NCBI RefSeq assembly: GCF_001194135.2
Contig: NC_068989.1
Location: 10,438,565 to 10,502,564, forward strand
DNA length: 64,000 nucleotides
Direction: 5' to 3'
Source: Octopus bimaculoides
Lineage: Eukaryota
Numbering within the stretch: the first letter of the stretch is position 1; each line of letters starts with the position of its first letter. The notes beneath the pieces are model-generated. The model saw only the letters and a program-made list of their open reading frames with translations, was not told the origin of the DNA and searched no databases. The position numbers and the translations under genes are program-made. Shown piece after piece: positions 28,201 through 63,179 of the stretch.

Positions 28201-29239
28201 TTTAGCTCAAACATCTGGTCTAATCAATCTAGTCATTTGTACATAGCAAAAATATTTCCTTTTTAACCCTAAATGGAAAGAAATTCTGAATAGACTAAAA
28301 TTTTCTTGTATTTTTTGATATTATTATATGAGTGAAGGTGTGCAGCCTAATATAGATTTAATGGCTTACTCTAAAACCATTTTGGTTTTTAAAAGCAAAA
28401 TGATTATATAAGTTTTTAAAAGCTCGTTTTTTGAATTTAAAATTATTTGGTACTTATTAGAACTTTTACTTTTGTGCTTGCTCCCTGCTAATTTAAGAAC
28501 CTGGCTCTATCCCTGGTTTCAAATTTTGGCACTAGGTCAGCAATTTTGTGGGAGGGGCTGAATCCATTAAATTGATTCCAGTGTTCAACTGCTACTTATT
28601 TAATTGACCCTGAAAGGATGAAAGGCAAAGTCGACCTTCTGGAGTTTGAACTCAGAACACAAAGATGGACAAAATACTGCTTAGCATTTTGCTCAGCATG
28701 CCACTTTATTTGGTATGTATATTCTTTTCTACTCTAGGCACAAGGCCCAAAATTTTTGGAGGGGGAGCCAGTCGATTAGATCATCCTCAGTACGCAACTG
28801 GTACTTAATTTATCAACCTCAAAAGGATGAAAGGCAAAGTCAACCTCAGTGGAATTTGAACTCAGGATGTAAAGACCACTAAGCATTTCGCCTGGCATGC
28901 TAACGTTTCTGCCAGCTGATCGCTATTTGGTACATATATTGGAACCTTTTCTGTTGTGCTTGTTCCCTTTAACTTAATAACCAGATTCTTTCCCTGGCCC
29001 ACTGTATAATATTAATATATATATATTCCATTTCCAAAGAGTTAAAATATTTCAGTACCAAATCTTAATCAAGACCTGAATTGATTTATATTTTTATAAT
29101 GCGACCAAAATGTGAATGGAAATGGAATTATAATAGAGCCACAATAATTGCATATTGAATTTCATATTTTCCAGAAACACTTTGGGAAATGGTTCAGATA
29201 TTGATTGTTTCTATATGGACATGAACCAATTTTACAACA

Positions 29240-29290
29240 ATGGAATCTAAATTCAGTGACAGCACTTGTTTGGAAAAAGAATTTTCTCAG
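29240..29290 (+). CDS. Type II membrane SEA/mucin-like protein, coding exon 1 (exon 29175-29290)
   Basis: Acceptor TTTTCCAG at 29174. ACAATGG start with an in-frame upstream TGA at 29222. Encodes MESKFSDSTCLEKEFSQ; GTGAGT donor in phase 0. Confidence 0.65.
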
Positions 29291-30481
29291 GTGAGTAGAT
29301 CTTTCATTTTCTTTAAATTGTACATTCTTAGCTTTTCCAATTGAAACATTTTTTTTTTTCCATTTAAGTTTTCAAGAAGTTTGTAAGTGTCATGTGTTAA
29401 AAATAGTTTGTGAGAAAGAGGAAAGAAGATGTGACATTTTCAGTTTTTCTCAAAGGTATAAGGGATGTGAGGCGATATTAGGTCAATTGAGAATCTTGGT
29501 CTTGACTTACTGTAAAAACAAGACATAAATATTGGTTCCACATTTGAACTCAGAACATAAAGACAGACAAAAGGATGCCAAGTAATTTGCCTGGTTTGCT
29601 AATGATTCTTATTTCTTTATTGCCCACAAGGGGTTACACACAGAGGGGACAAACGGATTAAGTTGATTATATCGATCCCAGTGCATAACTGGTACTTATT
29701 TAATCGACCCCAAAAGGATGAAAGGCAAAGTCGACCTCGGCGGAATTTGAACTCAGAACGTAGCGGCAGATGAAATACCGCTAAGCATTTCGCCTGGCAT
29801 GCTAATGATTCTGCCAGCTTGTCACCTTAAGCACGGCATAAATATTGGTTTGAAATTTTTGCACAAGGCCAGCAATTTAGGGGGAGAGGCAATTTGATTA
29901 TATTGACCCAGTGCTCAACAGGTACTCCTTTTATTAACCCTAAAAGGATGAAAGGTAAAGTTGATCTTGGAATTCGAATTCAGAACATTAAGATGGATGA
30001 AATGCCACTAAGCATTATGTCTGGCATGCTAACAATTGTGCCAGTTCACTCCCTAAGAATTTCAGGCTTTGTGACTAGAGTAGAAAAGAATATTTTTTTT
30101 TTCATATTCAAATGGAAGAGAGAGCTGACCAAGGGAATTTTGCTGAAGTTCAATCATCTTTTACTTGTTTCAGTCATTGGACTGCGACCATGCTGGGGCA
30201 CTGTCTTGAAGAGTTTAGTCAGACAAATCAACCCCAATATTCATTTGTAAGCCTAGTACCTATTCTATTGGTTCTTCGGTCAAACAGCTAGGTTACAGGG
30301 ATATAAACCAACCAAGACTGGTTGTCAAGGGGTCGGGGATGGAGAGATACAAGCACAAAAGTACACACACATGCACACAGAGTGCAGACAAAACTTAATA
30401 ATGACACAAAACCCCGAAATCCAAACACTATTCAGTTAATGGTTTCATCAAGTCTCTTTTTTTGTTTTTCTCCTCATTTAG

Positions 30482-30734
30482 CAAGACAGTTCCATTGAAT
30501 TCTCTGTCGTCCGCTCCAGTAGTTTGCTTGACTTTCTCAATTATTCCGATTGTATCAGTCGGGCCGAAGGTGAACCAGCAGGATCAAGCCTTACAGAAAC
30601 ATCAGCTCCAATTTCTTCTGAACGTATTTTCCAACAATCCAACCTCCGAAAACAATGGATTGCTTCCGTTTCAATTCTGTCGTTCTCTCTCATAGTTATC
30701 ACAATCACTTTTATCATGGTTTTCCTTACACATG
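30482..30734 (+). CDS. Type II membrane SEA/mucin-like protein, exon 2 (cytoplasmic tail plus TM helix)
   Basis: Acceptor CATTTAG, donor GTAAGT, phase 0 to 1. Ends in the hydrophobic helix WIASVSILSFSLIVITITFIMVFL. Confidence 0.8.
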
Positions 30735-32299
30735 GTAAGTTGCTCCATCAAATAAATCCCTTCTTTATTGCTGTAGCTGCTTTAACCCTTTACCGTTCAA
30801 ATTACTCTAACAAATGTAATACTCTTTTTAACTCTTTTACTTGTTTCAGTCATTTGACTGCGGCCATGCTGGAGCACCGCCTTTAGTCGAGCAAATCGAG
30901 CCCAGAGCTTATTCTTTGTAAGCCTAGTACTTATTCTATCGGTCTCTTTTGCCGAACCGCTAAGTTATGGGGACGTAAACACACCACCATCAGACGTCAA
31001 GCAATGTTGGGGGGACAAACACAGACGCACAAACATATACACACACACACATATATACATATACGACGGGCTTCTTCCAGTTTCCGTCTACCAAATCCAC
31101 TCACAAGGCTTTGGTCGGCCCGAGGCTATAACAGAAGACACTTGCCCAAAGTGCCACGTAGTGGGACTGAACCCGGAACCATGTGATTGGTAAGCAAGCT
31201 ACTTAGCACACAGCCACTCCTAATCATGCATTATCTTGTAGCTTTGAGATTTCAAAACTTCCATGCTTCCCAAAATTCAGTAAGAATACACCTGATACCC
31301 CCACCCTTTTTTAAATAATTTGTTCACCATTCACTTCCTGTGTATTAGTCCAGGTGCTATTCATGCACTTTTGGCTACTTTTTCTAATGAGCTGTAGTTC
31401 ACCTGAGCACTGTATACAATAAGTTCTTTCATCATCATCATGCTCAACATTTAATGTCTGTTTTCCATGCTGTCATGGCTTGGATGGCATAAGAGGAGTT
31501 GGCAAGGCTATGGGCCACATCAAGTTTCATAGTCTGTTTTGGCTTGGTTTCTACAACTGGATGCCTCTCCTAACACCAACCACTCCACAGAATGTACTGG
31601 ATGATATTATTATGTGATGAAGGTGGCGAGCTGGCAGAATCATTAGCACGCCAGGTAAAGTGCTTAGTGGCATTCTGAGTTCAAATTCCACTGAGGTTAA
31701 CTTTGCCGTCCATCATTTCGGGGTAGATAAAATAAGTACCAGTTGAGTACTGGGGTCGATGTAATTGACAATCTCCTCCCCTTTATAGTAGAAAGGATTA
31801 TTATTATAATTGATCTATGGCACCTGTGCCCAGCATCGCCTTCCTGGCACTTGTGCCGGATGGCACGTGTAAAGACATTTGAGCGAGATCGTTGCCAGTG
31901 CCGCCGAACTGGCTCCTGTGCAGGTGGCACGTAAAATACACCATTTTGAGCATGGCTGTTGCCAGTACCACCTGACTGGCCTTCGTGCCGGTGGCACGTA
32001 AGAGCACCCACTACACTGTCAGAGTGGTTGGCATTAGGAAGGGCATCCAGCTGTAGAAACTCTGACAAATCAGATTGGAGCCTGGTGTAGCCATCTGGTT
32101 TCACCAGTCCTCAGTCAAATCGTCCAACCCATGCTAGCATGGAAAGCGGACATTAAACGACGATGATGATGATGATGATGATTTTTACATCCCCTAATTA
32201 TAATTTCACCTCTTTAGTAATTAATACTTTGATTGTTGTTTCTGATAATGTTAAAATATTTCCTTGCTTTGATGGCTTCGTTACATTTTTTTTGCACAG

Positions 32300-32412
32300 G
32301 TGAGGTCATCACATATCTCCACATGAATGTGCTCAATGTACATTATCACCCAGCAATGAAGAATAAAGCATCGAAACAATTCAAAGAAATATCAGTGCCA
32401 TTCTGTCATGAG
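32300..32412 (+). CDS. Type II membrane SEA/mucin-like protein, exon 3 (putative SEA N-terminal part)
   Basis: Polypyrimidine tract plus GCACAG, GT donor, phase 1 to 0. Encodes GEVITYLHMNVLNVHYHPAMKNKASKQFKEISVPFCHE, a SEA-like pattern. Confidence 0.7.
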
Positions 32413-32793
32413 GTTTGTGCCATTGCATCTATCTATAAGAATAAGAAATATTCTGTTACCAATTTAATAAAAAAAGGACGAAGGGTAAGAGTGGGAGTAA
32501 GATGGGTGAATAAGAGACAAGTTGAAGGTTTTGATTCATCAGGTATTTATCTGAAGGAGTAATGGAAAGTTCTTAGTTTGTCGACTGGTTCCATAGAACT
32601 GAACATGAGAGTGGTTGAGTGGTAAGAAGTTTGTTTTCCAATCACATGGTTCCAGGCTCAATCTAGCAGTGTGACACCTTTAGGCAAGTGTCTTCTACTA
32701 CAGCCTTGGGCTGACCAAAGACTTGTGAGTGGGTTTGGTAGATGGAAACTAAAAGAAGCCTGTCATATATATATATATATATANNNNNNNNNN

Positions 32794-32828
<35 letters not shown>

Positions 32829-33299
32829 GTTGAATAAAGTTAAAACATGATCTGTTTTCATGTTTCTTATTATGGTATTTTAACATTAAAAAATATATAT
32901 ATATATAGAGAGAGAGAGAGGAATGTGGGTGTTGTCTATCATAGCTACATAGCCTTTAAGCTACTAGCTTAATTCAGGTCATCCTTCATATTGCAAACTT
33001 CTCATACTTGACAAGACTAATTGTCAAATATTAACTGATGTTGAAAAGAACTTCTTGTGAATGCATAACTTCATTCTGTCCTTTGTTCTCCTGTCAACTC
33101 TGCGTGCAGAATTTTACTGCCTTTATCAGAGACTTTAAATTCAGGTTCATTGATCACAATCAGCAAAGCCTAACTAGTCAGTTTAATGATGACATCATCA
33201 GTTGATCTGATGTGTGACCGTTGAACATCATTGGTTAGTTTTTTGCTGATGTCATTAAATTGATTCTCTTTAAAAATCAAATTTTATAGAGAAAGTAGG

Positions 33300-33720
33300 G
33301 CGTGCGTTAGGGTGAGTGGTGAAGTAAATGAGTGGTTTGATGTGAAGGTGGGGTTAAGACAGGGTTGTGTGATGTCTCTGTGGCTGTTTAATTTATATAT
33401 AAATGGTATGGTGAGAGAGGTAAATGCTAGAACCTTTGGTAGGGGAGCCCAAATGGTGGGAGAAAACAGAGAGAAATGGCAGGTGAGTCAGTTGTTGTTT
33501 GTTGATGATACAACACTGGTAGCGGATTCGGAAGAACAACTGAAGAGACTGGTAGTAGAGTTTGGAAGAGTGTGTGAGAGGAGGAAACTGAAAGTGAATG
33601 TAGCTAAGAGTAATGTGATGAGATGTTCGAGAGATGGAATGGCTGATAGGATGGATGTGAGTATAAATGGTGAGATGTTAGAGGAGGTGAGCGTCTTTAA
33701 GTATCTGGGATCACATGTGT
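33300..33720 (+). mobile_element. RTE-clade LINE reverse transcriptase fragment
   Basis: GLRQGCVMSLWLFNLY...LLFVDDT...KVNVAKSNVM...FKYLGS, truncated at both ends. Confidence 0.9.
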
Positions 33721-33967
33721 TATTTCTTTACTGCCCACAAGGGGTTAGGGTTATAGCCTGTGTCCACAGCTAGCCACCTACACTTTTCTCTGCAAAATAG
33801 GGGTAGTTTATCCTGTTCAGGCTATATTATTAGCATTATTCTGCGATTGAGAATTAAAAAAAAAATCACTTCTTTAACTTTCTAAAAGACATCCCAACAC
33901 TCCTAAAAGCAAACTTCGTTTGTTTATTTATGTTTGTCGTAATTTGAATTTAATATATATGTATATA

Positions 33968-34405
33968 TCTATATATATAAAAATGAGAATGTGTGTCTGT
34001 CTGTCTGTCTGTCTGTCTGTGTGAATCCCTAAAACTCGAGAACTACGCAACCAATTTCATTCAAATTTTACACATGCCTTACTTAGGGTTCCAGTTGTGT
34101 TTTAGTAAAAAAAAATTATTAATTTCTTGCAGAGTTCGAGCACACGGCAACATAATATCTCCTCCACTATTTAAGTATTAGGTGTCAAAAGTGAAACAAA
34201 AACACTCATGTCAAATACTTTCACTTTAAAAATGAAACTATTCCACTAACTGAAACAATCACATTTCGATACTGTAGTGACAGATACTTTCACAGAGAGA
34301 GAAAGAGAGAAAGAGAGAGACAGAAAGATAGAGAGAGAGAGAGAGAGATGTATATGTATACATATATATGTACACCATTTCGATACTGTAATGACAGATA
34401 CTTTC

Positions 34406-34446
<41 letters not shown>

Positions 34447-34453
34447 AAGAGAA

Positions 34454-34484
<31 letters not shown>

Positions 34485-35603
34485 TGTATATGTATATGTA
34501 TACATATAGATGTACACGTATATGTATATATAGATAGATCTATACATACATGTATATGTATACATATGTGTAGATGTATATATATATATATATATAGATG
34601 TACATGTAATATGTACACATATATACATGCATACAGATATCTATACATATATACACCCATCACACACACATACACATGCACACAAACACACACATTAGTC
34701 ATTTGTTTTCTTATNNNNNNNNNNNNNNNNNNNNNNNNNNNNNNNNNNNNNNNNNNNNNNNNNNNNNNNNNNNNNNNNNNNNNNNNNNNNNNNNNNNNNN
34801 NNNNNNNNNNNNNNNNNNNNNNNNNNNNNNNNNNNNNNNNNNNNNNNNNNNNNNNNNNNNNNNNNNNNNNNNNNNNNNNNNNNNNNNNNNNNNNNNNNNN
34901 NNNNNNNNNNNNNNNNNNNNNNNNNNNNNNNNNNNNNNNNNNNNNNNNNNNNNNNNNNNNNNNNNNNNNNNNNNNNNNNNNNNNNNNNNNNNNNNNNNNN
35001 NNNNNNNNNNNNNNNNNNNNNNNNNNNNNNNNNNNNNNNNNNNNNNNNNNNNNNNNNNNNNNNNNNNNNNNNNNNNNNNNNNNNNNNNNNNNNNNNNNNN
35101 NNNNNNNNNNNNNNNNNNNNNNNNNNNNNNNNNNNNNNNNNNNNNNNNNNNNNNNNNNNNNNNNNNNNNNNNNNNNNNNNNNNNNNNNNNNNNNNNNNNN
35201 NNNNNNNNNNNNNNNNNNNNNNACAAATATCAGGGTCAAACACTGTCTGTAGCTGGTCTTCTCTTGGAAGAGCCCTGCTTCTCACATGGACAACTGTATG
35301 TTGGCTGCTCAAGAGTGGGCAGCAACAAAAAACCTATTTGTATATGCTCCACAAGGGAAAACAAGGAACATAGTTTACAATGAGGTGTTATAATCACAAC
35401 AGCAAGAAAGTATGTACATGATCACCTTCTTTTACGAAACTTCATTGACTTTCATATATTTATATTGATATACATATATATACGTGTGTTTGGGTGCGTG
35501 TGTGTATATACATCTCTATATATAAAGATGATGCGTAGTCTAGACGGCGTTTTTAGATTTCATTATTCTCTTTAACCAGGGCAACGCCGGGTATTTCTGC
35601 TAG
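33968..35603 (+). mobile_element. Non-autonomous Helitron-like element (spans an N gap)
   Basis: 5-prime A|TCTATATATATAAA followed by (CTGT)n; 3-prime GGGCAACGCCGGGTATTTCTGCTAG|T. The same 5-prime block occurs inverted at 53870-54165. The two ends may belong to different copies. Confidence 0.65.
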
Positions 35604-35789
35604 TATATATATAAATATATGTATTAACTTGAAAGACTGGTTAAAGACAAGTTAACATTGTTAAAACTTTGTTTCTCTGCATAGTTTTTTCTCATCACAT
35701 TCAATACTATAAAATTATAGGATTGAGTAGTCGGGTGAGTTTTATAGTTGTTTGTTTGGATGTAATACATTTACATAATTCTATTCAAA

Positions 35790-36110
35790 ATAAGAAATTT
35801 CAGGTATGTAAGCAAGGCCTGGAATCAAAGGGTCTTAGTGTTTATTTAGCAAAGACCAAAGTCTTAGTAAGTCAGAAAACAGACAAATCACAAATTCCTT
35901 TGGGGACATGGCCCTGCTCGATATGTAGAAAATTGTAGGTAGAAACTCCATAGGCTGTACCCAGTGCAAGCTACGGACACATATGAGGTGCAGCAGTATC
36001 AGAGGAAGGTTTATAGAGAAAGTAGCCTTTGTGTGTGGCGGGTGTATAGGTATAGTAAACTCTAGAAATGTACAGGAAATAACTCTATCAAATGCCTGGC
36101 TCTGAAACAT
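35790..36110 (+). mobile_element. RTE-like LINE fragment with a Cys-rich segment after the RT core
   Basis: KQGLESKGLSVYLAKTKVLVS...WPCSICRK, then frameshifted CTQCKL and FVCGGC. Confidence 0.7.
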
Positions 36111-36149
36111 AACCCTTCTCTTTAATTATTTATTTATGCATGTTTTCAG

Positions 36150-36217
36150 GTAAATCGCTATATAAAATCAAGTTACCTGTCTGAAATTCAAAAGGGTTGC
36201 ACTCTCAAAAATATAAC
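36150..36217 (+). CDS. Type II membrane SEA/mucin-like protein, exon 4
   Basis: Acceptor TTTTCAG, donor GTAAGT, phase 0 to 2. Encodes VNRYIKSSYLSEIQKGCTLKNI(T). Confidence 0.7.
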
Positions 36218-38325
36218 GTAAGTTTCTTTCTTCTTCAGATTCTTAAGGTTATAAATTCAACTCTTGAGTTCGTATGTTAAAATGCTGCCAACATTTCTTC
36301 ACATCTAAGTCCTCAACTTAAACAAGGAAACAAACAAAGATATATACAGAGGCATTTGTAGAAAATGTGATTTAGCACTTGCTGGGTGCTTCACAATTTC
36401 ATACTTAGTTCATGGAAGGAAAAGGCGAGGACAAGATCTCTCTGAATAAATAATAATAATAATAATTTATTTCTTTGAATAAACGTTCCATCTCAAGTTA
36501 ATGGTAGCCATGAACACCTAGGTGAAGAAACAGCAGGGCTGGTAGTTAGGCACCAAGGCAATAAGGCATTATTACAGACCCGCAGTGCCGCTTGCCATTA
36601 AAGGTCCAATTCTTGATGGAACTGCTCTAAGTTGCGTCCTGCCCAGTCAGAAGCTGTGATCGAAGAAGGTGAATGGGGGTGAACCCTAGCTGCTGCTAAT
36701 GATTGCACATGCGCATAAGGGGCTTCCGTCAGGTCTTCGGAAGGCTCTAATCCTTGCGTATGCATAGATGAATGTTCCAACATGTTGTCTAGAACTATGC
36801 GTCACTACACATTTGTACACAAGTTGAGTAATATAAGAAAATGTAAGACATGTTAAAGTTTAGTATGTGGGACTCTGCTGAGGAGTTAAATTTCCAATGA
36901 GGGAATTGTTTCATGGTCAGGAGCTGGTTCCTTCTTCATTGGAGAAATTTCAAAAACAAAGAACAGAAATGCACACACACACGTGTGCATGTATGCATAC
37001 ATACATACATGCATGCATTGTGGCTGCAACTTGGTTTTGAGCAGTACCATTGCTTGATTGTTCTCCTAAACATGAGCAGCACAGATGTGGCTTTTCTCTT
37101 CTGCTAGAAACCAACACTATTGCACAGATATGGCAATGATGGGTTCCACTTGGAGCTGGTGTTCTGCGACCTTATCACCCTCACTGACACATGCTTTTAT
37201 TCCATCGTGGAATTTTTCATTGAGTGTTTTGTCTTTCTTGGCTACAGCCAGCCATAGTAAAGCAACACATAGATTTATATAATTAGGCTTGTCTCAAGTT
37301 TTGATAAGTGATAAGGAAATGAGACACAAGTCTATTCTCAGAATGAACAGTGATCTATTGTAGATAGCTTTCCTCATAAACAGAACGAAGCTCTGTAATG
37401 CAAACTAATGAAATCATCATCTATGTGAGAATGATGTCACTACTTAAAGTAATGAGTTATTTGTATTCTGATAGAGTGGAATCTTTTAGAGTCAAGTGTT
37501 CTGTCTATTGATATAGAATACTGCAAACAGCTAAACAGACAATTAGCTTACACACATACAACCCAGAAAGAATCGGACACCTATGTAAGCATTCAACATG
37601 CTTTTGAAATTGCTGCCAAATCCTGTTTGCGATGAACAATCTATGTAGTTGTTCAACATGTGAGAAATAGCAGTCAAATCTCTCTCTTGTCATACTCTGC
37701 CATCTTAAATAAAGAAGAACTTGATGGACAATGTAGTTCTAAATAAACAAAAGAGATGGCCACAGATCTCCATAAACAGCACTGAGCTGCAATTAAAAAA
37801 ACATACATATTATTGGTGTTGGTTAGATCCAGGTGAAATTTGGTCAAGCAGGCATACAATAAAAGACATTCCAACCTTACCGTTGCAAGTTTTTTAGTGT
37901 GTACCTAGGACCTTATTTTCTTATATGCTTTTTCCTTATTTAAGAGAATAGAATGTGATTTGAGAAAGAATTGACTGTTATTTCCATGTAAAGTTCTTAT
38001 TCATCATCATCATCATTGTTTAACGTCTGCTTTCCATGCTAGCATGGGTTGGACGATTTGACTGAGGACTGGTAAACCAGATGGCTACACCAGGCTCCAA
38101 TCTGATTTGGCAGAGTTTCTACAGCTGGATGCCCTTCCTAACGCCAACCACTCCGAGAGTGTAGTGAGTGCTTTTACGTGCCACCGGCACGAAGGCTACT
38201 CACATTTAGAAACGAGGTTGAGAATGATCAGTAGGAGCTATGTACAGTGAACATGAACATGAACATGGTTTCAATTACTCTTTATAATGGCCCATATTTC
38301 TTCTCCTTTTGGTTTTCCCTTTCAG

Positions 38326-38549
38326 AAAATCTCACAGCTACATTGGATTGGGTGTCCTCCTTGCTTTCAAGAACAGCAACAAGTTGTCCAGCCCTGATCA
38401 AATTCGTGATATTATTATATCTAAATCAAATTTGCAGCTGGTCAATCAGAAAATTTATATCAAGATAGATCGTTTCTTGATACCTTACAAATCGTTAAGG
38501 GTGCATCTTATCAAAGCAGTATCTTCTGCAGCCCCTTTCTTTATTAAAG
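38326..38549 (+). CDS. Type II membrane SEA/mucin-like protein, exon 5
   Basis: Acceptor TTTCCCTTTCAG, donor GTAATC, phase 2 to 1. Encodes KSHSYIGLGVLLAFKNSNKLSSPDQIRDIII...FFIK. Confidence 0.7.
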
Positions 38550-39384
38550 GTAATCAACTTTCACCATTTTCCTCTTTCATTGTTTGAAGAAGCTAAATTA
38601 AAGGCATTTTTATTCATTCAACTTATGACACTCATTCATTTTATGTCCATTTTTAATGCTGGCATGGGTCGGGTGAATACTTACTAAAGCATTGTTTAAC
38701 AGATATTCTTTTACTCTTTTACTTGTTTCAGTCATTCGACTGTGGCCATGCTGGAGCACCGCCTTTAGTCGAGCAAATCGACCCCAGGACTTATTCTTTG
38801 GATGCCTAGTACTTATTCTATCGGTCTCTTTTGCCGAACCGCCAAGTTACGGGGACGTAAACACACCACCATCAGTTGTCAAGCGATGTTGGGGGGGACA
38901 AACACAGACACACAAACATATACACACACATACATATATATATATATACATATATACGACAGGCTTCTTTCACTTTCTGTCTACCAAATCCATTCACAAG
39001 GCTTTGGTTGGCCCGAGGCAATAGTAGAAGACACTTGCCCAAGGTGCCACGCAGTGGGACTGAACCCAGAACCGTGTGGTTGGTAAGCAAGCTACTTACC
39101 ACACAGCCACTCCTGCGCCTAGATGACTTTTCTGACACTAATCATTATCTGTTATGCATGAGTAATTTAGATTGTACATAAAATGGCATTACACACACAC
39201 AAAGTCTTTTGTTTATCATTTTAATCTTCTTCCTGGTTGTATAGTCTCAGATCAATTCTAATCAAGTAGAACTTTGATATGCAGCAAGTATTTATTCTAT
39301 CATGTATAAAAGATGAAAGTCACAATTTTTTATTTTCTTGTGTTAGTTATGAGGCTTCAAAAAAATCAAATTTTTATGTTTCAG

Positions 39385-42300
39385 AGACAGGTAATCACTT
39401 GGACTTTGCCGCACCAAATGATGTAGATGAAAATACTACTTGGAATGACCATTTACATTTAAGTACCAATCAAAATGTTACTGATCAAACCAGTTCTGTG
39501 ACAATGGTCAATACTGAAAGGATAACTGATCCTAACACAAAAACAAATATAAGTCATGATTCCATAAAGAGACAAGAAAATTCACTTAAAGCTGCTGTTA
39601 CTATACCCAGCTGGACAAGTTCTACAGGTGTTTGGGGCTATAGATTCCTTGCAGCAATCACAAGCAATTCCTTTGATCTTCAACACTCAAAAGAATTAAG
39701 TGATGTTTTTAATTTTCTCCACAACAAAACTCTAGTTGAGAAAAGTTCTATCTTTACAAATCTGACTAGAAATATCAGTGAGGACATTACTGGCCTAGAT
39801 GTCGACAAAGGTCACAGTAATCAATCTGAAATCAAACAAGTGAACTTGTCCATAACTACATTGACCCTACATAGAGAAAATAACACTAATCCCAGGACTA
39901 AGCAAGAGAACAATTCGCATGAATCAATCAATGTAAAAACTGGTATTAACATAAAACCTTCTGGTTCTGGTTGGCTGGCCATTCCTTTTCAGTATTTAAC
40001 GAGGGCTTCTTCACAAAACAAACAAAATTCATCAAGCAGCAATCACACGAATAGTAAGCATGAAAAACAAAAATCTCGTAAAGATCTGCCAGCAGAAGTT
40101 GGGATTATAAATTCCAACAAAACTGCAACAGTTCAAAATTATATGGCAAACACTGACATGAATAAAGATAATCCTTTGCAGGGACCCAATAATCTAGTGG
40201 GGATTACAAATAATCCATTTGATCTTTCTGAAAAGAATGACAGTAACATATTTAAGAGCTCACTTACACCTGTTAAAACTGATAAGAGTAGCTACAAAGA
40301 TTATATAGGAAAACAGGGGAATCTTAATTCAGATATCAAGAAAATTCCAGTTGTTACCAATAGTCAAAGAAATGTAACCGACATGTTATCAGATATTATT
40401 ATGGAAGACAACAACTCTACATTGAAGCTTCCAGTTGACACCTTTGATGAGACAACTATTAGAACATCACAACCTGGTTCAGAATCTGGGAATAAAGCCA
40501 TTGTTTCAGATTTGTATCTGCTTTCTTCCTCTGCTAATGTAACTAGGAATCAGCTAGAGATTGAAAAAACATACATAGCCAGTGGATTGAGTCAGGATCA
40601 TCCTAATGCTATAATCTCAAATTCAGGCTCAACCACTAATTCTTTTAAAGATATACTCTCTTCTCTGGTCACTTCTACTTCCAATGACAGGCCAAAGGCC
40701 CCAGGAATGGGAAAAGGAAATTTAACACCAAATCATACCCATATGAGAAATATAGGCCTCAAATCAACAGATGAATCCCATTTCGTGCAAGATGTTTCAA
40801 TAACTCCTTTGATCAACAAATATTTAAACAAAAGTGATTACATTGCTACAACAAGCAGGTCCTCCCCAGACAGGGACCAACAACCTGTTATTTTACAGAA
40901 GGTAACCACAAAAAGAAGCCAACAAGGTTTTATTGCATTAAAAGCATCTACTACAAACAGAATACCACAAGCTGTTGTTATATCAGAGTCAGACAGAAAT
41001 AGCGACCAGCAAAGTATTATTACATCACAGAAGCCTACTACAAACTGGAACCAGCAAATTGTTGGTATACTCCAGTCAAACAGAGACAGGGCTCAACAAA
41101 ATATTGATACACCCCAATCAACTAGAAACAGGGATCAACAAGGTATTGATACAGCACAGAAGCCTACCACAAATGTGAGCCAGCAAGTTGTTGATATATT
41201 CCAGCTCAACAGAGACAGGGGTCAACAAGATGTAGCTAACACAAAGTCAACTAGAAATAGGGACCAGCTAAGTGGTGTTACATTACATGAATTCACCACA
41301 GTTAAAAGCCAGTTAGTTGCTGTTACACAGAAGTCTATCACAGACATGAATCAGCAAGATGCTTCTCTACAAATGTATACTGTCACAGTGACAAGTCCTT
41401 ATCACAGGACATTCACAACAGTTGAACCCCCTCTGCCTCAGCATTCTCAGGGCATTGTGTCCCCAACAATACCTATTACAAAGAGTAACACTGATACCAC
41501 TGTTTGGTCCCAGGATTTGAATTTATTGAAAAACACAGTGAAAGCCGATAATGAAAATTTGACCATCGGAGCTGTCCATCAAGCTGATTTCCAGATTGAC
41601 AATAACATTAAGAAAGAGCATCCAACCGACTCTGAAGAAGATACTGGTGTAACTGCTTTTATGTCTGCAGGATTTGGTTGGGTAAAGATTCCTGTCAATA
41701 AAACTTTACCTGACAATAACATTGGAAATGACACTCATAATGCATTTACCAAAAAGGGTTATAAAAAGCCCACGAAACTCAGTATTGTCACCGAATCTAT
41801 GAAAGGCTCGCTACTAGCTTCTATAATCACAAATATCACCAATAGATTAACAACTAACCAGAATGTAGATGTTACTAATACTAAACCACTACATAGTTTT
41901 CACCCTACACAAAATTCTACTGCAACAAGATTGAATGTAATTAAACCCCTAGATTCTAATGTTTTAGCTTCATTTGCTCCTGAGGAAGTGCTTGTAACTA
42001 GTAAAATAACTGAGAAAAATGTTATATATATGGTGAATCATGATACATCCATAGTAAACCCTCTTGAGATTAATGTGAATACAAATTATAATTCAACAAC
42101 TAATACTCCGAATATTACAACAGCGTTTACACCTAATACCACTCGAAGAAAGGTTCAACATTCTGCCTCAACTGAGAGCTCTCCAAGACCAATATCAACA
42201 GAAATAAAGCATTTACAAAATGTTCCTACTTTTGAGCAAAACAAATCTTTGACACACCTGCTAAATGTAACTTCTGATCTTCTTCATGTGTCAAGCTCTA

Positions 42301-42692
42301 AATGGTCCCATAACCTGACTAAAACACATCCACTACATATCTCTGTTCCTCAGTTTATAAGTAATACAACCCAAGATGTGCCCACTACATCAAACCAATT
42401 TATATCCTCACCAAAATTTATATCAGATCAACAGCAATTCACCAATAATTCTTCCAGTCATGAGGCAGTGACTGTATCTTCTCCAAAGCCTCTCACTTCA
42501 ATTAATGGTTTTACCGCACCAAATCCTCCATATATGGGTTTGGTATCACCTTCAAACCAATCTGTTATGAAATTAAAAGTGACCCCAGATCGTATTTCTG
42601 ACAATATGTTTGCAGTAAAAGCTGCAACTGCAACAGCTTCTAGCTTCACAGCCACAAAGTCTTCATTACAAAAGAAACAAAAAAACAAGTAA
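39385..42692 (+). CDS. Type II membrane SEA/mucin-like protein, 3.3-kb Ser/Thr/Asn-rich exon
   Basis: Uninterrupted frame of about 1100 codons in AT-rich DNA. A phase-1 acceptor (TTTTTATGTTTCAG, ending 39384) matches exon 5. Many N-x-S/T sequons; AATAAA at 42812. Confidence 0.85.
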
Positions 42693-44784
42693 TTAATAGA
42701 AATATTGTCAAATTGTTAAGTTCACAACCAGGGACAGATTAAGATCCACAGAGGCTCTAAGCATCTAAAAGATTTTGGTGCCGCCATTATGTAATTCAAA
42801 ATATAAACAATAATAAACCATAAAATATATCGACAGGAACTGTCAAGGCCAGAGACCACACCAAGCTCCATTGTCCATTTTGGCTTGATTTCTACAGCTG
42901 GATGCCATTCCAAACGCCAACCACTTCACATAGAGTACTGGATGTTTTTTTGTTTTTTACATGACATCGGCACCAACACCAATGATATATATTTTTTTAA
43001 TTCTTTTTCTTTTATTTGTTTCAGTCACCACCTTTTAGTCGAACAAATCGACTCCAGGACTTACTCTTTGTAAGCCTAGTACTTATTCTATCAGTCTCTT
43101 TTGCCAAGCCGCTAAGTTATGGGGACATAAGCACACAAACATCAGTTGTCAAAAGATGGTGGGGGGACAAACACAGACACAAACATATATATACATATAT
43201 ATGACAAACTTCTTTCGGTTTTCATCTACCAAATCCACTCACAAGGCTTTGGTCGGCCCGAGGCTATAGCAGAAGACACTTACCCAAGGTGCCACACAGT
43301 GGGACTGAACCCAGAACCATGTGGTTGGTAAGCAAGCTACAAGGATTATCTAGAAATGATTATCTCCCTTACATTAATTGACCACATGGTTACAACTTGT
43401 TATCTAAAAATAATTTCCATGTTTGCAAAGGCGTTGCTGATCAGAATGGCCAAGCGATACTCGCTGCAACAGCCACCCAACCCCATGAGGCTCATTTCTC
43501 AAACGGGCCACAGTTATCCGGATTCTGCGGAGGAAATCAGTCTGGGATATACAATTCTCCCGCCACCATCTCCTGCTGTTTAACCCTGCATTTTTTCATT
43601 TTCTTTGTTTCCTTTGTGAGGTAGTTCTGATTTTTTTTTTTATACTTCTAATATAGTGACTTTTCTTTTTCTTCCTGCAAAAGTATGTTGCTAAATAAAA
43701 ATCTATTTTATATTAAAAAAAAAAATTAATTTCCATGTTTATTATTCAAGTTCCTGAAAATAAAACAAAGAATGTTAAATTAAAAATGTTTCTAGTAATA
43801 AATATTTCAACTATTAACAAAGAGAAAGAAATTTTAAATATGTTATCTTTTTTGATCGTGGTTACAAATTTGTGGAATACTTTATATATTAGTTATATAT
43901 GTCAAAACTTGGAAATCACAACTAACAGCCAGATGCCATGCATGTGGCCAATCCTTACCTGGTTCCAAGGTGTTGTGGAAAGATCCTGACCACCCCCCCG
44001 TGACCAAAAGTGGACTGACTCATTTCAATAAAATAAAGAAACTGTGTGAACTGTTGACATTTGTGAAAATCGATTTTTGAAACTGTTATTGAAATTGTTG
44101 ATGGATTTGTTGATTGAACTATTGTTGAATTTGTTTTTTCTACCCATTGATGGGCACGGAAGCTGGCAGCTATGCTGCGGTGGCGGGGCAGAAGCCCGGC
44201 ACCCAACATGTTGCAGCTAAGGGAAGTTGAGACGGAAGGGAGAGATTTTAAGGAATACAATTGACTAATTGTGAAGGAGGGAGATTGCCTCCGCTTAACA
44301 CCACCAGCCGACACGTTACAAAGAGCGGAGAAAAAGAGGGTGGACATTGGAATTAGACACTGAGGGAAAATGGCTGTAACTTTTTTATTTTTTAAGTTAG
44401 GCGATTTTCGTGTTCGATAATGTGTTCTATATGTCCCGGTCATGCGATTCCCCCTAAAAAATTTTTTTGCGATTTGGATTGTCCGCGTTTAGCTGTTATT
44501 TCTAGCATATCAAGTTTCGTGGTGGGGACTCCACATGTGATCCTTTTTCTGTTTCAATAGAAATTGAAGCCGTTCATTTTCACATCTAAGTTGCGAGAAG
44601 GCTACTCGTACGACCTGGACATGTAGAACACAATGANNNNNNNNNNCATATCAAGTTTCGTGGTGGGGACTCCACATGTGATCCTTTTTCTGTTTCAATA
44701 GAAATTGAAGCCGTTCATTTTCACATCTAAGTTGCGAGAAGGCTACTCGTACGACCTGGACATGTAGAACACAATGAAAATTAA

Positions 44785-46966: not shown

Positions 46967-48601
46967 TTAACGTTTTGTCTTCGCTAATTTCTCTTTGCGT
47001 TTTTTCACATGCTTTGGGACTTTTTGACTTCTTGACTTTTGTTTCGCTTCTTTCACTAATTTTTTACGGTTCTTGCGACTATTGGGCGATTCGTTCCTGG
47101 ATCTATGGTGAATATTTTCTTCAACGTTCTTACCACTGTCTTCGTTTTCATCATCACTATCCTGTCCGCTATCATCTGTTTGGTCAGAGTTTTCTGCAGA
47201 CTCCTCTGCAGAACAAGTTTCATCATTTTGTTTTTCAAGTAATAATGGTTCTTTTTGTGGTCCGCTTAAATCTGGTTTTTGACCAACAACTGTCTGATAG
47301 TACACCTGATCTGTGTCTCCTTTCTTAGCATTTAAAATATCACGTTCAAAATTAACAACTTCATCGAGATTTCTTGGGATAAAAATCTTCTTAAACACCT
47401 CCTCGTCTACTTTGTCTTGTTGCGTAATTTCTTCCAAAGTTCTCCCAGCAGTAATGGCCATAGCCTTATCTAGATAATCGTCCACGTTCGTGTCGGTTAT
47501 AGAAGAATCAGTGACAAAATCGAATAGTTCCTTTACAGTTAAACCACAAACAGAATGTTTACGGAAAAAGTCCGTCACATTTGTACAGTCTTTACGTAAG
47601 AAAAACAATGCGTTAGGGTGGTCGTGTTCAACCGATTGAGAAACATCGATCAAATAGATTTTCCCTTCGTGAAACAACATGTTGAATTCACTTAGATCAG
47701 CGTGAACTAACCGACATTCATGATACAAGGTTCTCATCATTAAAATACAATCGAGATACAACACACGAGCTTTTGATTCTGTTAAGACAGCTTCGTGGAG
47801 CAAAGGTGCTGGCCAGCCGTCTTTCCCGATAAACTCCATTAGGAAAACATGACTTCGTAAAAGAATAGGTTTCGGACACAAAATACCAGACTGATGTATT
47901 CTTTGAAGATTTCGCATTTCTTTCTCAGCCCACGTTTTGACCATCTTTCTGGGATTCCGCTTGCAGTATCCATGTCGAAATCTAAATTCACCCGAGACGT
48001 ATTTGTCTCGATCTTTAAAGACCAAAATCGAAGTTTTGTAAATTTTTACAGCGATATCAAAATCATCTTTTCCTGTGGCATGGTAAACATTGGCTTCCTT
48101 GCCAGTGCTAATACAACCGTTTATATTATATATGACACCACGACCTAGTAATTTAAAAATTATCATTCGAGTCCGTGGATCAAGAGCCTGTTCTGAAGTG
48201 GCTCGCTCAGACTTGTCTTTTCCTCGAAGACGTTCCGCTTCGGCTTTCCTTTCCGATTTACTAAAAAAACAATTTGATGGTCCTTCGTATTTCGTGGTTT
48301 TCATCTTCAAATCGAGAACATTTTTAAGAACTTTATCAAGAGGCTGATAAGACTCCTTCGTATTTTTACTTTGTGACGCTGATTGATGTGAATTCGTTGG
48401 TCCGCCTGACATGGCAGTGTTATATCTCTTCGTGAAATTTCCAGACATGTTGGTCCATTCAAAACTCAGGTCATCATCGTAATCATCCGAAGAATCTTCA
48501 ATTTCTTCACTTGAAGAACTGCTGTAAACTTCCTTTTCGATTTTTTCTTGTGGAATAGGCTCTGATGTATCTTCTACGGCATCGTCGAACTGTCCATCCA
48601 T
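46967..48601 (-). CDS. RIOK1: Serine/threonine-protein kinase RIO1, single-exon CDS (544 aa)
   Basis: N-terminal [44 protein letters not shown], catalytic loop [24 protein letters not shown] and C-terminal [10 protein letters not shown]. No stops or introns. Confidence 0.97.
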
Positions 48602-54165: not shown

Positions 54166-57100
54166 TAGGCGCAGGAGTGGCTGTGTGGTATAGGCGCAGG
54201 AGTGGCTGTGTGGTAAGTAGCTTGCTTACCAACCACATGGTTCCGGGTTCATTTCCACTGCGTGGCACCTTGGGCAAGCGTCTTCTACTATAGCCTCAGG
54301 CCGACCAAAGCCTTGTGAGTGGATTTGGTAGATAGAAACTGAAAGAAGCCTGTCGTATATATGTATATATATATGTGTGTGTGTATATGTTTGTGTGTCT
54401 GTGTTTGTCCCCCCAACATCGCTTGACAACCGATGGTGGTGTGTTTACAACCCCGTAACCTAGCAGTTCAGCAAAAAGAGACCGATAGAATAAGTACTAG
54501 GCTTACAAAGAATAAGTCCTGGGGTCGATTTGCTCGACTAAAGGCGGTGCTCCAGCATGGCCACAGTCAAATGACTGAAAGAAGTAAAAGAGTAAAGATA
54601 CACATATTTATACATAATGATCACCATTGTTTTAATGTCCAGAGTCTCAAATCTGGCCCATGATATGAAATGGTATATGGTATACAAAGTGTGATAGATG
54701 AAAGCATATGACCTTGTGGTTAGGGTGTTGTCCTTGTGATTGTAAGATCATACTTTTGTTTCCTGGACCAGATAGTGGGTTGTGCTTTTGAGCAAGATAT
54801 TTAATCTTATGTTGTTGTAGTCCGCTCAACTGTAAATGAGTAACCTTGTGAAGGATCAGCGTCCCATTCAAAGGGAAATGTGATCTTGGTCATTGATATG
54901 TCATGGAAACTGAGGAATCAGCCTGGTGAGTCAAGAAAAAAACTATGGAATGGTAGGGATATGATGTGGATAGATATCTTTCTCTGTGATATATGGTGAG
55001 ATGTGTGCTGATGTACAGTAATGTCATGATATAGCATAGTATGTGATAATACAATACCATGGTATAGCATGGCTACAATATCATGTGGTGCTATGTTGTT
55101 ATTTAGCTCCAGATTAGATCTGATTATGCAACCCTATGATCAAACACATATTAGCTATGACCATGTTCTCTGGTGGGGTGGCTAAGTGAATCGAGGAAGA
55201 TACGGATGCTATTTCTATTAAGTCAAATGAAGACATTAAGGCTTCTTCATTGGTTCATGCTGTGTGATAGTGTTGTTTAGTTCCAGTTCAGCCTGGATAA
55301 GTAGACTTACAATCAAACGCGTTCCAGCTGTAACCGTCCTGTGATAGTAGTGCAAGTGGGTGGCTTGAGGGAGGTTTTGTTAGTTGGTTCAAGGATCATG
55401 TAAAGCAGGACTTCCCAAGCTTGAGGTGAATTTGATCCCATGAGGTAAATTTAACCTACCCAGGAAATAAATTTGCTGATTCAGAATTTGTACATATTTT
55501 TTATTTTAATTGTAATTTTAAAAACCTGTAGTTGAAAAGAACATTTAAAATGAAATTTTTTTTACTTTCTCTGAGTTTGGATTTAACAATTTGTATTGTA
55601 TATACTTTTTAATTACTGTTATTAATGGTGTAATCTGATTTGAAAGACTATATTTGATCCTGGTATTTGTTCATCATTTCTTTATAAATAAGTGAAATAA
55701 CATAGTCATAGACTACATTTATATATTTGCCAATATATTTGCCTAATCCTTGTTAGCATAGAAAACAGACATAAAAATGAATGAATAGACCTGTATACAA
55801 TATTATACGTGGAGGCACAATGGCCCAGTGGTCAGGGCAGCGGACTTGCGGTCATAGGATCGTGGTTTCGATTCCCAGACCGAGCGTTATGAGTGTTTAT
55901 TGAGCAAAAACACCTAAAAGCTCCACAAGGCTCTGGCAGGGGATGGTGGCAAACCCTGCTGTACTCTTCCACCACAACTTTCTCTCACTCTTACTTCCTA
56001 TTTCTGTTGTGCCTGTAATTCAAAGGGTCAGCCTTGTTACACTGTGTCACGCTGAATATCCTCAAGAACTATGTTAAGGGTACACGTGTCTGTGGAGTGC
56101 TCAGCCACTTGCACGTTAATTTCACGAGCAGGCTGTTCCGTTGATCGGATCAACTGGAACCCTCGATCTCCTGGTAGGGTTTTNNNNNNNNNNNATACAT
56201 CATTAGATGTACACCTGACTTTCCTATATTAAATTAAGAATTGAACAGAACGCTGAACTCCAGACTATCAACACAAACAACATTTATTCAAGGAGGAAAA
56301 TATACATCTTTACTCTTGTTTGTTGAGACGTCTTCGGTGTGTGAGAACATGGTTGTTGGGACGTTGGTATATTGATGTGAGCTGTCTAGCGTGAGTTCGA
56401 AAGATGGAGAGACAGCTAGACACGTCCTTGCTCAATCGCTGGCCAGCAAGAAAGAGGGCGATCAAAGCGGGAAAGCTTGGTTGTTGAATTCCACGCATGC
56501 GCACGGCGTCACTACAGGTTCTTATGCTGGACAGCTCAGAGTAGTGGCCAGACTAACGTGGATTAGCTTTTCTGAGAGGTAAAAACGGGCTTGAGTAGTA
56601 AAAAGCAAAGTTATAGATGCATTGACGACAATTCAAACCCAACAAGACCTAGGAGATGTAGGGCTTCTCACAGGGAAACATAGAGAAACAGAAAAGACGA
56701 TGGAAAGTCGAAAACAATGGAGAAAAATTGTTGATGGTCTACCATAACTTTTCTAAGAATGGTAAAGTTTAGGCTAAGACTAAAACAAGTCCAAAGTTGT
56801 TTCTTGTTGGTATAATTAAAGTGATATTAGTCACTGACTCATATTGTAATTTCCTTATCATATAATTATATATAGATTTTTAATGCTTATTGTCTGAAAT
56901 ATGTTGACACTAACTTAAATATATTCAAATCACTTAGATATTTTATCATTTAGCTGTTATCAAATTTCATCAAGTCATGATGAAATTTATTGTTAGTTTA
57001 TACTGGTGGAGGGCAGAGGGCTGTCTTATCAACATAAATTGATAAAAGATTAAACTACCTTGACAACTCCGGTTCAGTTTTTGGTGTGTAGAAAACCTGG

Positions 57101-58787: not shown

Positions 58788-58869
<82 letters not shown>

Positions 58870-60843: not shown

Positions 60844-61005
60844 ATGGCGTCATCGGCAGATACAGTTTTCCCTGTCGAAGGTCTTTTACCAAAAAAAGAA
60901 ACTGGTTCAACTTCATTTCTCGCCAAGTATCCTGACTACGATGGTAGAGGAATCTTAATCGCTGTATTAGATACTGGAGTTGATCCTGGTGCTGCTGGTT
61001 TACAG
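60844..61005 (+). CDS. TPP2: Tripeptidyl-peptidase 2, first coding exon (gene continues beyond the window)
   Basis: [54 protein letters not shown] contains the TPP2 N-terminus and the subtilase catalytic Asp motif DTGVD, followed by CAG|GTAGAG in phase 0. Confidence 0.93.
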
Positions 61006-63179
61006 GTAGAGCTAGATTTTTTTTTCCTCCTTATATGTGTAGGTGTGTATTAGCCATGTGTGGTATCGTTCGTTGCTAAAGCTTTAATTGTCAAAATTAA
61101 AAATGAAATATGTTATATTCTGGTTAATAAAATAGATTTATTATAACCTGAGTGAACCAAACCCAATCACAAATTATTTGCTGACTCAACATTTTATCAA
61201 TTAAGACACCCGTTAAAGTACATGTACCTTTTTTGGTCAAGATCCCTCAATAATGGTTACAAAATGGGGGTTCTATTTATAATTGTGATCAATTATATAT
61301 TTATCCCCTATTTTATAACTATACCTTTTATTTTACAATTCATCATCACCCTTAATGCAGTTTAAAAAAAAAATGAATGGCTATATCTTTTTATTTCTTT
61401 TATTTGTTTATTTTTCTTTTTAATCCTGCTGCAATGATTACGAATTGTCATTAAATAGTTAATTTAGCAACTTGTTCTCTTTTTTCTGATTTCGTCTGTC
61501 TTTATTTTTCGTCAGATGATAATTTTAAAGTACCTTTTAGGGGGTTAGGAAATAGTAATAACTTTCGACATTTTTTTTTTTTTATCTTTACGTACCCTAC
61601 TATATTTCGACAACTTTTTTTAGCGTATTTCACCTGCAGCCTCATCACCATCTTAATGTCTGTGCATGTAGAACAAGAGACCTACATCTATATAAAAGAA
61701 AACTCCCATCACGCACCGATTGTTCAATTAGCGGAAGTAAAGAGGATAACCTTAGGAAAAGTTGTCAAAATACGTAAAGGTAAATGTCGTCATTCTCCAA
61801 GACCGGTCAGGTTTTACCTTCTTGGTTATTAATATGCCATATTGTGTGGCCGTTTATCCTCCCGAATTCCTTCTATATTGTACAAACAAATGGTCTGATT
61901 TCAGATTCCTGTAGTATTTGACTTTATCAGTATCCTACGTGTATGTATAACTATTCACACGTTCACATACACCAGTTACTATATTCTAGGTTAGTTATCC
62001 CGGATGCAATCTCCATTACTAGTTGCAAACTTCTGCCCGTGTAAATATCCATAATTTAAAGTCCCACAGATCTGAAATTGCTTCACGAAACATAACAAAA
62101 TATTCTAAGGTTAATTGTATCTGGTGCTCCTCTCTAAATTTGCTTGTGAATATTGTATACATTTTAGTTGTTAAAATTATTGATTAATCCAGATGTCCAC
62201 GTACATTCAATGTATTCGTATTTTGATTTAAAATCGATTTTGTTTGAAAGTTTAGCATTTAGGCAAAGTTTAATTTCTCATGTCATGAGTAGCGTGAGTC
62301 AAGCAATGACCAGGCATTTCAAAATATTCTTGCCTGAATTATTTGAAGTTGAGAATTAGATACTTTACAAAGTTTTGCGTTGTTGTATATTGATCGCTGT
62401 ATGACACATTCTCGTCAGTCACGGCGACAGAAAGTTCTTATAACCTCTTAAATTCAACGATGATGCAAGACGAGTGAAGAACCCGTGACATAATCATTAC
62501 AAGCTCGTGATGAAAAAAACAAAAAACAAACAAAACTAGTGGGATACAGACGTTGTCAACTAAAGTGCATATCCACCCTACTTTTTATCTGCCGGGGGCA
62601 TTGCTTTTCTCATCGCCTGCATTTAATACACAGTGGTATATGAAAAAAGAAAGAAAGAAAAAATGGGGTATAAAAAACAGTATTGACTCCTTCCAAATTT
62701 GAATTGTCAAGTTGTATTGAAAGGTCTTTTAGTTACTCTCGCAATCTTTGTTCCCAACAGAAGAACTAAACGTTTTGATTTAAAATTTAATTTTTCAATG
62801 GAAGTACAGCCTTTTAAAAATAATTTTTGTTTCTGACAATCTTAAAACTATACCGGGAGACAATTTTACTCGATTAACACAATAAAGGGAGACAGATGTT
62901 GGCAGTTCTAAAGAAAGGTTTTAAGGAGGAAGGATTTGTGCAATTTTGGTTAGTGAGATGTTTCAGAAAAATGAGTTGGATAATTTCCTAATTCATCTTT
63001 AATAAACATCTACAACAAAACTACTTTCTGAGTGAACAAGATTTATGATCAAACTTAGTATATGAAGAAAAAAATGTTATTTATGAGATAACCTGCTTTG
63101 GGCAACAGATTTGACATGTAGCTTGAGCAAAGTCCCAGCCAAACCAAAAGTAACATGTTGGTGAAATGATAAGGTTCCT

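Follow-up and report, generated by a model that had tools for sequence, protein, structure and literature searches.

A predicted type II membrane protein of Octopus bimaculoides with a MUC16-like SEA domain and a long mucin-like ectodomain

In a stretch of 64,000 nucleotides from Octopus bimaculoides (here called the window; NCBI RefSeq assembly GCF_001194135.2, contig NC_068989.1, positions 10,438,565 to 10,502,564 of the forward strand), we found that a six-exon gene on the plus strand encodes a 1338-residue protein that is neither a mucin nor a serine protease of the type II transmembrane kind (TTSP) by the criteria for membership in these groups. With a probability of roughly 0.6, we read it as a type II membrane-tethered surface glycoprotein in which an uncleaved MUC16-type SEA domain would form the pedestal of a long glycosylated projection, a mirror-image analogue of the membrane mucins. 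The gene itself is only modestly new, being an already annotated, experimentally uncharacterized member of an old molluscan SEA-protein family. Positions given below are those of the window, and the features are collected in Table 1.

The coding sequence amounts to 4017 nt (1338 codons plus the stop), with GT-AG introns throughout and intron phases of 0,1,0,2,1, so that the six-exon model of a preliminary description of this DNA, with its canonical splice sites, was reproduced exactly. The spliced translation is identical, residue for residue (100%), to O. bimaculoides XP_052826372.1, and exons 3 to 5 were located by mapping this public 1338-aa protein back onto the window. The longest open reading frame (ORF) within the span from 29175 to 42692 occupies 39279-42692 (1137 aa counted from its first ATG) and is entered in phase 1 by the acceptor before 39385. 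At the other end, the ATG at 29240 lies in a favorable Kozak sequence (acaATGG), with an in-frame TGA six codons upstream of it; position 29175, where the gene had been taken to begin, is therefore not the start of the coding sequence, but it is preceded by AG and could be the start of an exon containing 5' untranslated sequence.

The window is AT-rich (approximately 36% GC) and has eight runs of N, and intron 3 (32413-36149) contains the two assembly gaps listed in Table 1. The alignment to Octopus vulgaris (window 32181-32893) continues across the first gap, the flanks of the second are colinear with O. vulgaris, whose locus is free of N, and O. vulgaris has no extra residues between exons 3 and 4. 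A SEA profile run over all six frames found pieces in exons 3, 4, and 5 only. Because these three exons alone cover profile positions 1-112, no exon is hidden in the gaps, and a missing exon in the second gap was rejected on the combined grounds of this full coverage and the colinear, gap-free O. vulgaris locus. The assembly gaps leave the coding sequence unaffected.

The gene at this locus is intact and maintained by selection. All six exons recur in O. vulgaris, where exons 1 to 5 have identical lengths and the splice-site sequences are identical as well. At a synonymous divergence (dS) of about 0.10 between O. bimaculoides and O. vulgaris, the ratio of nonsynonymous to synonymous substitution (dN/dS) is 0.20 for the cytoplasmic tail, 0.16 for the transmembrane helix, 0.21 for the SEA segment, and 0.53 for exon 6, where the sub-regions range from 0.42 to 0.74 with the highest value at residues 237-500. 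The ratio is significantly below 1 both in the N-terminal part (Fisher P = 2e-4) and in exon 6 (P = 3.5e-5). The relaxed constraint on exon 6, its low-complexity composition, and its lack of any known domain might suggest a decaying or nonfunctional ORF, or an annotation artifact whose long last exon has stayed open by chance. We consider this highly improbable, however, given that the 3.3-kb frame is open, with its stop inside the exon, in O. bimaculoides, O. vulgaris, and Octopus sinensis, and that all indels relative to O. vulgaris are in frame while the introns differ by up to several kilobases. In addition to the low dN/dS and the identical splice sites, 32 of the 39 N-glycosylation sequons of the whole protein are kept in O. 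vulgaris, and a homologous open frame exists in Argonauta hians. In that species exons 2 to 5 are present at 54 to 70% identity, the exon 6 homologue aligns at 31 to 36% identity over residues 355-786 and 912-1284 within a 1933-codon open stretch, and RIOK1, the convergent neighbor of the octopus gene, is again found downstream. A predicted isoform X2 of O. sinensis (XP_036362495.1, 1023 aa) exits exon 6 early, at about position 41693, where a weak GTCAAT donor follows ...GFGWVKIP. The exon that would encode its final 17-aa tail (QYYCILTCIRNPLILGA) was found neither in the window nor in the 10 kb downstream in O. vulgaris.

A type II orientation is well supported by sequence-based prediction. 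There is a single hydrophobic segment, with a maximum Kyte-Doolittle hydropathy over 19 residues (KD19) of 2.59 at residues 76-100 and a next best value anywhere of 0.93, and its flanks show a positive-inside charge bias (three K+R on the N side versus none on the C side). The N terminus is hydrophilic (maximum of 0.92 over nine residues, KD9, in the first 40 aa) and has no signal-like segment, and the C terminus is hydrophilic as well. The predicted order is thus the one originally proposed, with a short cytoplasmic tail (75 aa, acidic, serine-rich, and conserved), one transmembrane helix, a globular segment, and a very long S/T/N-rich region.

The globular segment proved to be a SEA domain, and its subtype is MUC16-like. 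SEA (PF01390) is the sole Pfam match in the protein, scoring 30.2 bits over residues 108-194 where the gathering threshold is 26.4, and the O. vulgaris orthologue scores 27.3 bits; local iteration placed the domain bounds at residues 107-219, the end corresponding to position 38497 within exon 5. An exhaustive phmmer search with residues 98-243 matched 16 proteins. Besides the orthologue in Argonauta (63% identity), these came from unionid mussels, oysters, scallops, and gastropods, and one was a lizard protein whose tandem SEA repeats look MUC16-like. The SEA segment alone gave no match to PDB sequences with phmmer, and a profile built from an alignment of 46 related SEA segments was needed to reach solved structures: mouse MUC16 (1ivz, 9.1e-11), TMPRSS11D (8vis, 5.4e-9), and 2e7v (6.4e-9), as well as human MUC16, agrin, TMPRSS6, and, weakly, MUC1, with E values from 9.1e-11 to 2.4e-5. 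AlphaFold2 with the 46-sequence alignment predicted a structure of the order beta-alpha-beta-beta-alpha-beta with high confidence (pLDDT 91.5, pTM 0.83), while a single-sequence run on residues 1-285 was discarded (pLDDT 43.5), the transmembrane segment being its only confident helix. In a Foldseek search with the confident model, ranks 1 to 7 were all SEA domains (MUC16, TMPRSS6, and the mouse TMPRSS11 family; E = 1.9e-7 to 1.6e-5), with query-normalized TM-scores of 0.62 to 0.72 and target-normalized scores of up to 0.80, and the best match was the human MUC16 SEA5 domain (7sa9; TM-scores of 0.71 to 0.80). What had been called SEA-like from the letters alone is therefore borne out by a Pfam score above the gathering threshold, by the profile matches to solved SEA domains, and by the fold check on exons 3 to 5, which returned SEA and not some other fold. 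A cysteine pair, Cys137-Cys156, is conserved, as is a pair about 19 residues apart in MUC16. The domain begins about 7 residues past the sole transmembrane helix, on what the charge bias and the sequons suggest is the extracellular side, which is where SEA domains are located.

Autoproteolytic SEA domains carry a G-S-x-x-V motif, where x is V or I, in the beta2-beta3 hairpin (PMC9478142), and a second source likewise places GSxxV in a beta-hairpin of the cleaving domains (PMC10556640). No GS dipeptide occurs in residues 101-236 of the octopus protein or in the Argonauta orthologue, which sets the domain apart from the autoproteolytic subclass, and the beta2-beta3 turn of the AlphaFold2 model reads K-S-H-S-Y. 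The lack of an autocleavage motif noticed earlier thus extends to the whole domain, and autocleavage of the octopus protein is unlikely. Most MUC16 repeats are not known to carry a GSxxV site, either. In two gastropod proteins of type II multi-SEA architecture, Batillaria attramentaria KAK7480482.1 and Aplysia californica XP_035828243.1, the SEA domain nearest the membrane contains GSVMV or GSLLV, together with an extra Cys-x-Cys insertion just upstream of this site, and these members of the subfamily may still autocleave, unlike the octopus protein.

A cytoplasmic tail, a signal-anchor helix, and a juxtamembrane SEA domain, in this order and in type II orientation, are also the stem layout of the HAT/DESC proteases (TMPRSS11D/HAT), the matriptases (TMPRSS6/matriptase-2), and enteropeptidase. 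The SEA domains of these SEA-stem TTSPs are homologous to that of the octopus, as judged by the profile matches to TMPRSS11D (8vis above), to 2e7v, and to TMPRSS6, and by the Foldseek match 9nrc. One could therefore propose that the gene is a truncated or mis-terminated TTSP whose catalytic exons lie farther downstream or have been lost, and the O. sinensis isoform X2, which leaves exon 6 for a distant exon, would fit such a proposal. Its tail is just 17 aa long, however, the stop within the 3.3-kb exon is shared by the three Octopus species, the mussel homologues are without a protease as well, and both in sequence and in fold the SEA domain is matched best by those of MUC16. While the N-terminal signal-anchor topology of TTSPs is predicted for the octopus protein, their C-terminal trypsin-like S1 domain has no match in the protein or in the plus-strand open stretches between its stop codon and RIOK1. 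As the preliminary description had noted, no trypsin, LDLa, or CUB domain precedes RIOK1 on the plus strand; Pfam found no match of any kind in plus-strand open stretches of at least 30 aa from the stop codon to 46969, and a TTSP remnant was rejected on this ground. What the gene has in the place of these domains is the 1100-aa low-complexity region with its predicted glycosylation, and we regard a protease origin of this kind as extremely unlikely.

Transmembrane agrin offers another comparison, as it has a type II anchored isoform and a SEA domain flanked by S/T-rich glycosylated segments, and the agrin SEA domain (8s9p) is matched by the octopus profile at 7.1e-6. In agrin, however, the SEA domain lies far from the membrane and is accompanied by follistatin, laminin-EGF, and laminin-G domains, none of which was found in the octopus protein by Pfam.

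The long region encoded by exon 6 had been called a mucin region, a label that proved too strong. Its 1101 residues include no cysteine and consist of 12.1% T, 11.8% S, 10.3% N, and 5.1% P. The S+T content is 23.9% overall, with a maximum of 34% per 100 aa and 36% per 50 aa, whereas a mucin domain with a high content of proline, threonine, and serine (PTS domain) has more than 40% S+T and about 5% P (as quoted in PMC9080433). The sole tandem repeat found by TRF has a 129-nt unit in 2.3 copies with 77% matches, far from the variable-number tandem repeats of mucins, and self-comparison of exon 6 by blastp showed no internal repeat. No match to exon 6 was found in Pfam, NCBIfam, or PDB sequences (phmmer). 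The feature that is enriched is the N-X-S/T site, of which the ectodomain has 38, most of them in exon 6, compared with 26.3 +/- 4.4 in shuffled sequences. Exon 6 is best described as coding for a fast-evolving, mucin-like low-complexity ectodomain that is predicted to be rich in N-glycans and that is not a mucin domain by the usual criteria.

The likeness to membrane mucins is nevertheless considerable. A SEA or VWD domain beside the membrane anchor is one mark of membrane-bound mucins. As in MUC1 and MUC16, the SEA domain adjoins the membrane anchor and a long region, glycosylated in the mucins and predicted to be so in the octopus, lies distal to it, and MUC16 provides both the best sequence match and the best fold match to the octopus SEA domain. 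One may ask whether the protein is a true membrane mucin in which exon 6 codes for a densely O-glycosylated PTS domain that forms a brush. Such a view could appeal to the SEA domain next to the membrane and the very long, cysteine-free, S/T-rich region behind it, to a PTS content of 42% in one 100-aa window (residues 1140-1239), and to the name "mucin-16-like" that NCBI gives to related gastropod proteins. But the S+T content stays under the 40% mark even in the richest 100 aa, with P at 5%, there is one short repeat in place of a repeat array, and the enrichment in asparagine and in N-X-S/T sites points to N-glycans. Furthermore, most membrane mucins are type I proteins, with a signal peptide and a C-terminal transmembrane segment and cytoplasmic tail, while the octopus protein has an N-terminal anchor, no signal peptide, and a cytoplasmic tail unrelated to those of MUC1 and MUC16; it also has a single SEA domain where MUC16 has a tandem array. 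On balance, we think it unlikely that this is a true membrane mucin.

Exon 6 is punctuated by three hydrophobic motifs, all of them short and matching G-(x)-W-x-x-(x)-[IF]-[PL] (TGVWGYRFL at about residue 331, SGWLAIPF at about 445, and FGWVKIPV at about 1013), and they are also present in O. vulgaris. An adhesion or receptor protein, in which exon 6 encodes modules that fold or bind ligands but have diverged beyond the reach of profiles, with the SEA domain as no more than their stalk, would be in line with these G-W-x-x-I-P motifs, with a dN/dS below 1, with the parts of exon 6 that align between Octopus and Argonauta, and with 100-aa windows that fall on the folded side of the charge-hydropathy boundary (for example, residues 1037-1136). 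This appears quite improbable to us, because exon 6 matches nothing in Pfam, NCBIfam, or PDB sequences, has no cysteine in 1101 extracellular residues, shows dN/dS values above that of the SEA domain in all its sub-regions, and has nothing beyond the SEA domain that aligns with the mussel proteins.

Some of these observations, and a few others, weigh against the surface glycoprotein that we favor. Exon 6 is borderline in charge-hydropathy (H of 0.423 versus a boundary of 0.416) and about 30% hydrophobic, and it may be less than fully disordered; in residues 1037-1136 and in the three motifs, it may fold or bind other molecules and not merely carry glycans. The behavior of a dense O-glycan brush is not assured at an S+T content well below that of classical mucin domains, topology and glycosylation are predictions, and no characterized homologue was found from which a function could be transferred.

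With these points in mind, we infer the function of the protein from its architecture alone. In the membrane-tethered glycoprotein that we propose, the N terminus would be cytoplasmic and the remainder extracellular. The SEA domain would stay uncleaved and serve as a rigid juxtamembrane pedestal, and the long tail, heavily N-glycosylated and probably O-glycosylated, would project from the cell surface and possibly become part of the glycocalyx of an epithelium, where it would act as a barrier, a lubricant, or an anti-adhesive layer. In its geometry the protein would be the mirror image of MUC1, MUC16, and other type I membrane mucins, and the conserved cytoplasmic tail may point to sorting or signaling contacts.

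The preliminary description had regarded the protein as possibly lineage specific, which holds solely for its long tail, as this part is alignable within octopods only. Unionid mussels share the transmembrane-SEA module, exon structure included. In Potamilus streckersoni (KAK3594892.1, 1282 aa) and Sinanodonta woodiana (KAL3846933.1, 1506 aa), a short N-terminal tail, a transmembrane helix, and a SEA domain of the same subtype precede a stretch of over 1000 aa that is S/T-rich and has almost no cysteine. The transmembrane exon of the Potamilus gene ends in phase 1 and its SEA exons measure 113, 68, and 221 nt, with phases 0, 2, and 1; the SEA exons of Octopus measure 113, 68, and 224 nt, with the same phases. 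The SEA subtype is common to gastropods, scallops, oysters, and vertebrate MUC16. Crassostrea gigas XP_034330353.1 and Pecten maximus XP_033759839.1 also resemble the octopus and mussel proteins in their short N-terminal tail, transmembrane helix, and same-subtype SEA domain (25 to 30% identity among these molluscan type II SEA proteins and the octopus), but in such other molluscs the transmembrane-SEA module is joined to EGF repeats or further SEA domains and not to a long tail. The mussel proteins, for their part, have nothing alignable outside the SEA domain, and their tails are tandem repeats of about 64 aa.

Synteny was unusable as a test of orthology, since the mussel locus has no RIOK1 or TPP2 within 10 kb on either side, and the mussel and octopus proteins may be orthologues or may share an exon-shuffled module. 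Nevertheless, the common architecture and the matching sizes and phases of the SEA exons point to an ancient family of molluscan surface glycoproteins. We tentatively suggest, while holding it somewhat more doubtful than not, that these proteins belong to an old, undescribed molluscan class of "inverted" membrane glycoproteins that predates the split of cephalopods and bivalves. Such a class would combine a type II anchor, a non-cleaving MUC16-type SEA domain whose conserved exon module is phase 1-1 with sizes of 113/68/221-224 nt, and a distal region that is hypervariable, free of cysteine, and heavily glycosylated, and it would do the job of type I mucins with opposite polarity. A family of this kind could be relevant to the mucosal or skin barriers of molluscs, and also to the question of how mucins and membrane proteases came to exchange SEA modules. 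Sequence resembling exon 3 was also seen elsewhere: on a 4.3-Mb contig of ENA assembly ERZ25073814 (37% GC, eukaryote-like), the units of a tandem array at approximately 7870-10360 resemble residues 106-141 with up to 57% amino-acid identity. Because its period, about 107 bp, cannot be divided by three, the array looks like an exon-derived satellite and not a coding repeat.

The gene looked unannotated in the preliminary description, and this impression has to be corrected: the identical 1338-aa protein is present in RefSeq as XP_052826372.1 (earlier XP_014778046.1), under the name "uncharacterized membrane protein DDB_G0293934," and in UniProt as A0A0L8IC40, already labeled "SEA domain-containing protein." In O. 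vulgaris and O. sinensis, the orthologous proteins (CAI9728029.1 and XP_029641255.2, respectively), found at 88% identity in a protein database search, are named "serine-rich adhesin for platelets-like," and these automatic names, like "DDB_G0293934," most likely reflect composition only. In the searched literature, we found no paper that names these accessions or that treats octopus together with SEA domain and mucin, and the search for cephalopod or type II proteins gave papers on mammalian mucins only. The practical outcome of our analysis is thus a correction, namely, that the gene is present in the annotation, that the gaps are harmless to it, and that "mucin" is too strong a label.

Table 1. 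Features of the SEA gene and its surroundings (window positions)
Feature	Position	Strand	Description
Coding exon 1	29240..29290	+	51 nt, residues 1-17; start of cytoplasmic tail; donor GTGAGT; identical exon in O. vulgaris
Coding exon 2	30482..30734	+	253 nt, residues 18-101 plus 1 nt; remainder of the 75-aa cytoplasmic tail and transmembrane helix; followed by phase 1 intron
Transmembrane helix codons	30656..30730	+	residues 76-100, WIASVSILSFSLIVITITFIMVFLT
Coding exon 3	32300..32412	+	113 nt, residues 102-139; SEA beta1 and first half of alpha1, including Cys137
Assembly gap 1	32784..32793		10 N, inside intron 3
Reverse-transcriptase fragment	33264..33770	+	Pfam RVT_1, 60 bits; inside intron 3
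Assembly gap 2	34715..35222		508 N, inside intron 3, adjoining microsatellite-like sequence
Coding exon 4	36150..36217	+	68 nt, residues 140-162; remainder of SEA alpha1 and beta2, including Cys156
Coding exon 5	38326..38549	+	224 nt, residues 162-237; SEA beta2-beta3 hairpin (KSHSY), beta3, alpha2, and final strands
Coding exon 6	39385..42692	+	3308 nt, residues 237-1338 plus TAA stop (42690-42692); cysteine-free, S/T/N-rich
Tandem repeat	40987..41287	+	43-aa unit, QKPTTN...NRDRxQQ
RIOK1	46967..48601	-	convergent; RIO1 domain, 240 bits; single uninterrupted 544-aa ORF, coding region without introns
TPP2 exon 1	60844..61017	+	tripeptidyl-peptidase 2; about 12 kb past RIOK1

The introns and flanks of the gene also contain remnants or probable copies of mobile elements. 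The reverse-transcriptase fragment in intron 3 is a remnant of a non-LTR (non-long-terminal-repeat) retroelement and partly aligns to intron 3 of O. vulgaris. A dispersed repeat of about 300 bp occurs in many copies on both strands in the introns and flanks of the gene and around RIOK1 (at about 30858-31190, 38677-39180, and 43016-43331, among others). Pseudo-translations such as RLWPCWSTAFSRANRPQDLFF and CPRCHAVGLNPEPCGW recur between its copies, and it is probably an element resembling short interspersed nuclear elements, often with a TA/CA microsatellite after it.

The gene order in the window is the SEA gene (plus strand), RIOK1 (minus strand), and TPP2 (plus strand). RIOK1 has multiple exons in most animals, and in Argonauta hians, as in the window, the RIO1 genes are single ORFs (548 aa, two copies within 68 kb); octopod RIOK1 may be a retrogene that replaces or supplements the parent gene. 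In Argonauta, the models GAB1601216.1 and GAB1601225.1 (locus L004, 10001-58486) join TPP2 exons to exon 2 of the SEA-gene orthologue, with RIOK1 copies on both sides. It looks as if the SEA-RIOK1-TPP2 unit has been duplicated in tandem and gene prediction has fused neighboring genes across the duplication. The Argonauta gene model is probably truncated as well, as the annotated gene ends at 58486 while, in positions 56350-62148 of this locus, the exon 6 homologue runs on to 62148 with low-complexity interruptions encoded by microsatellites.

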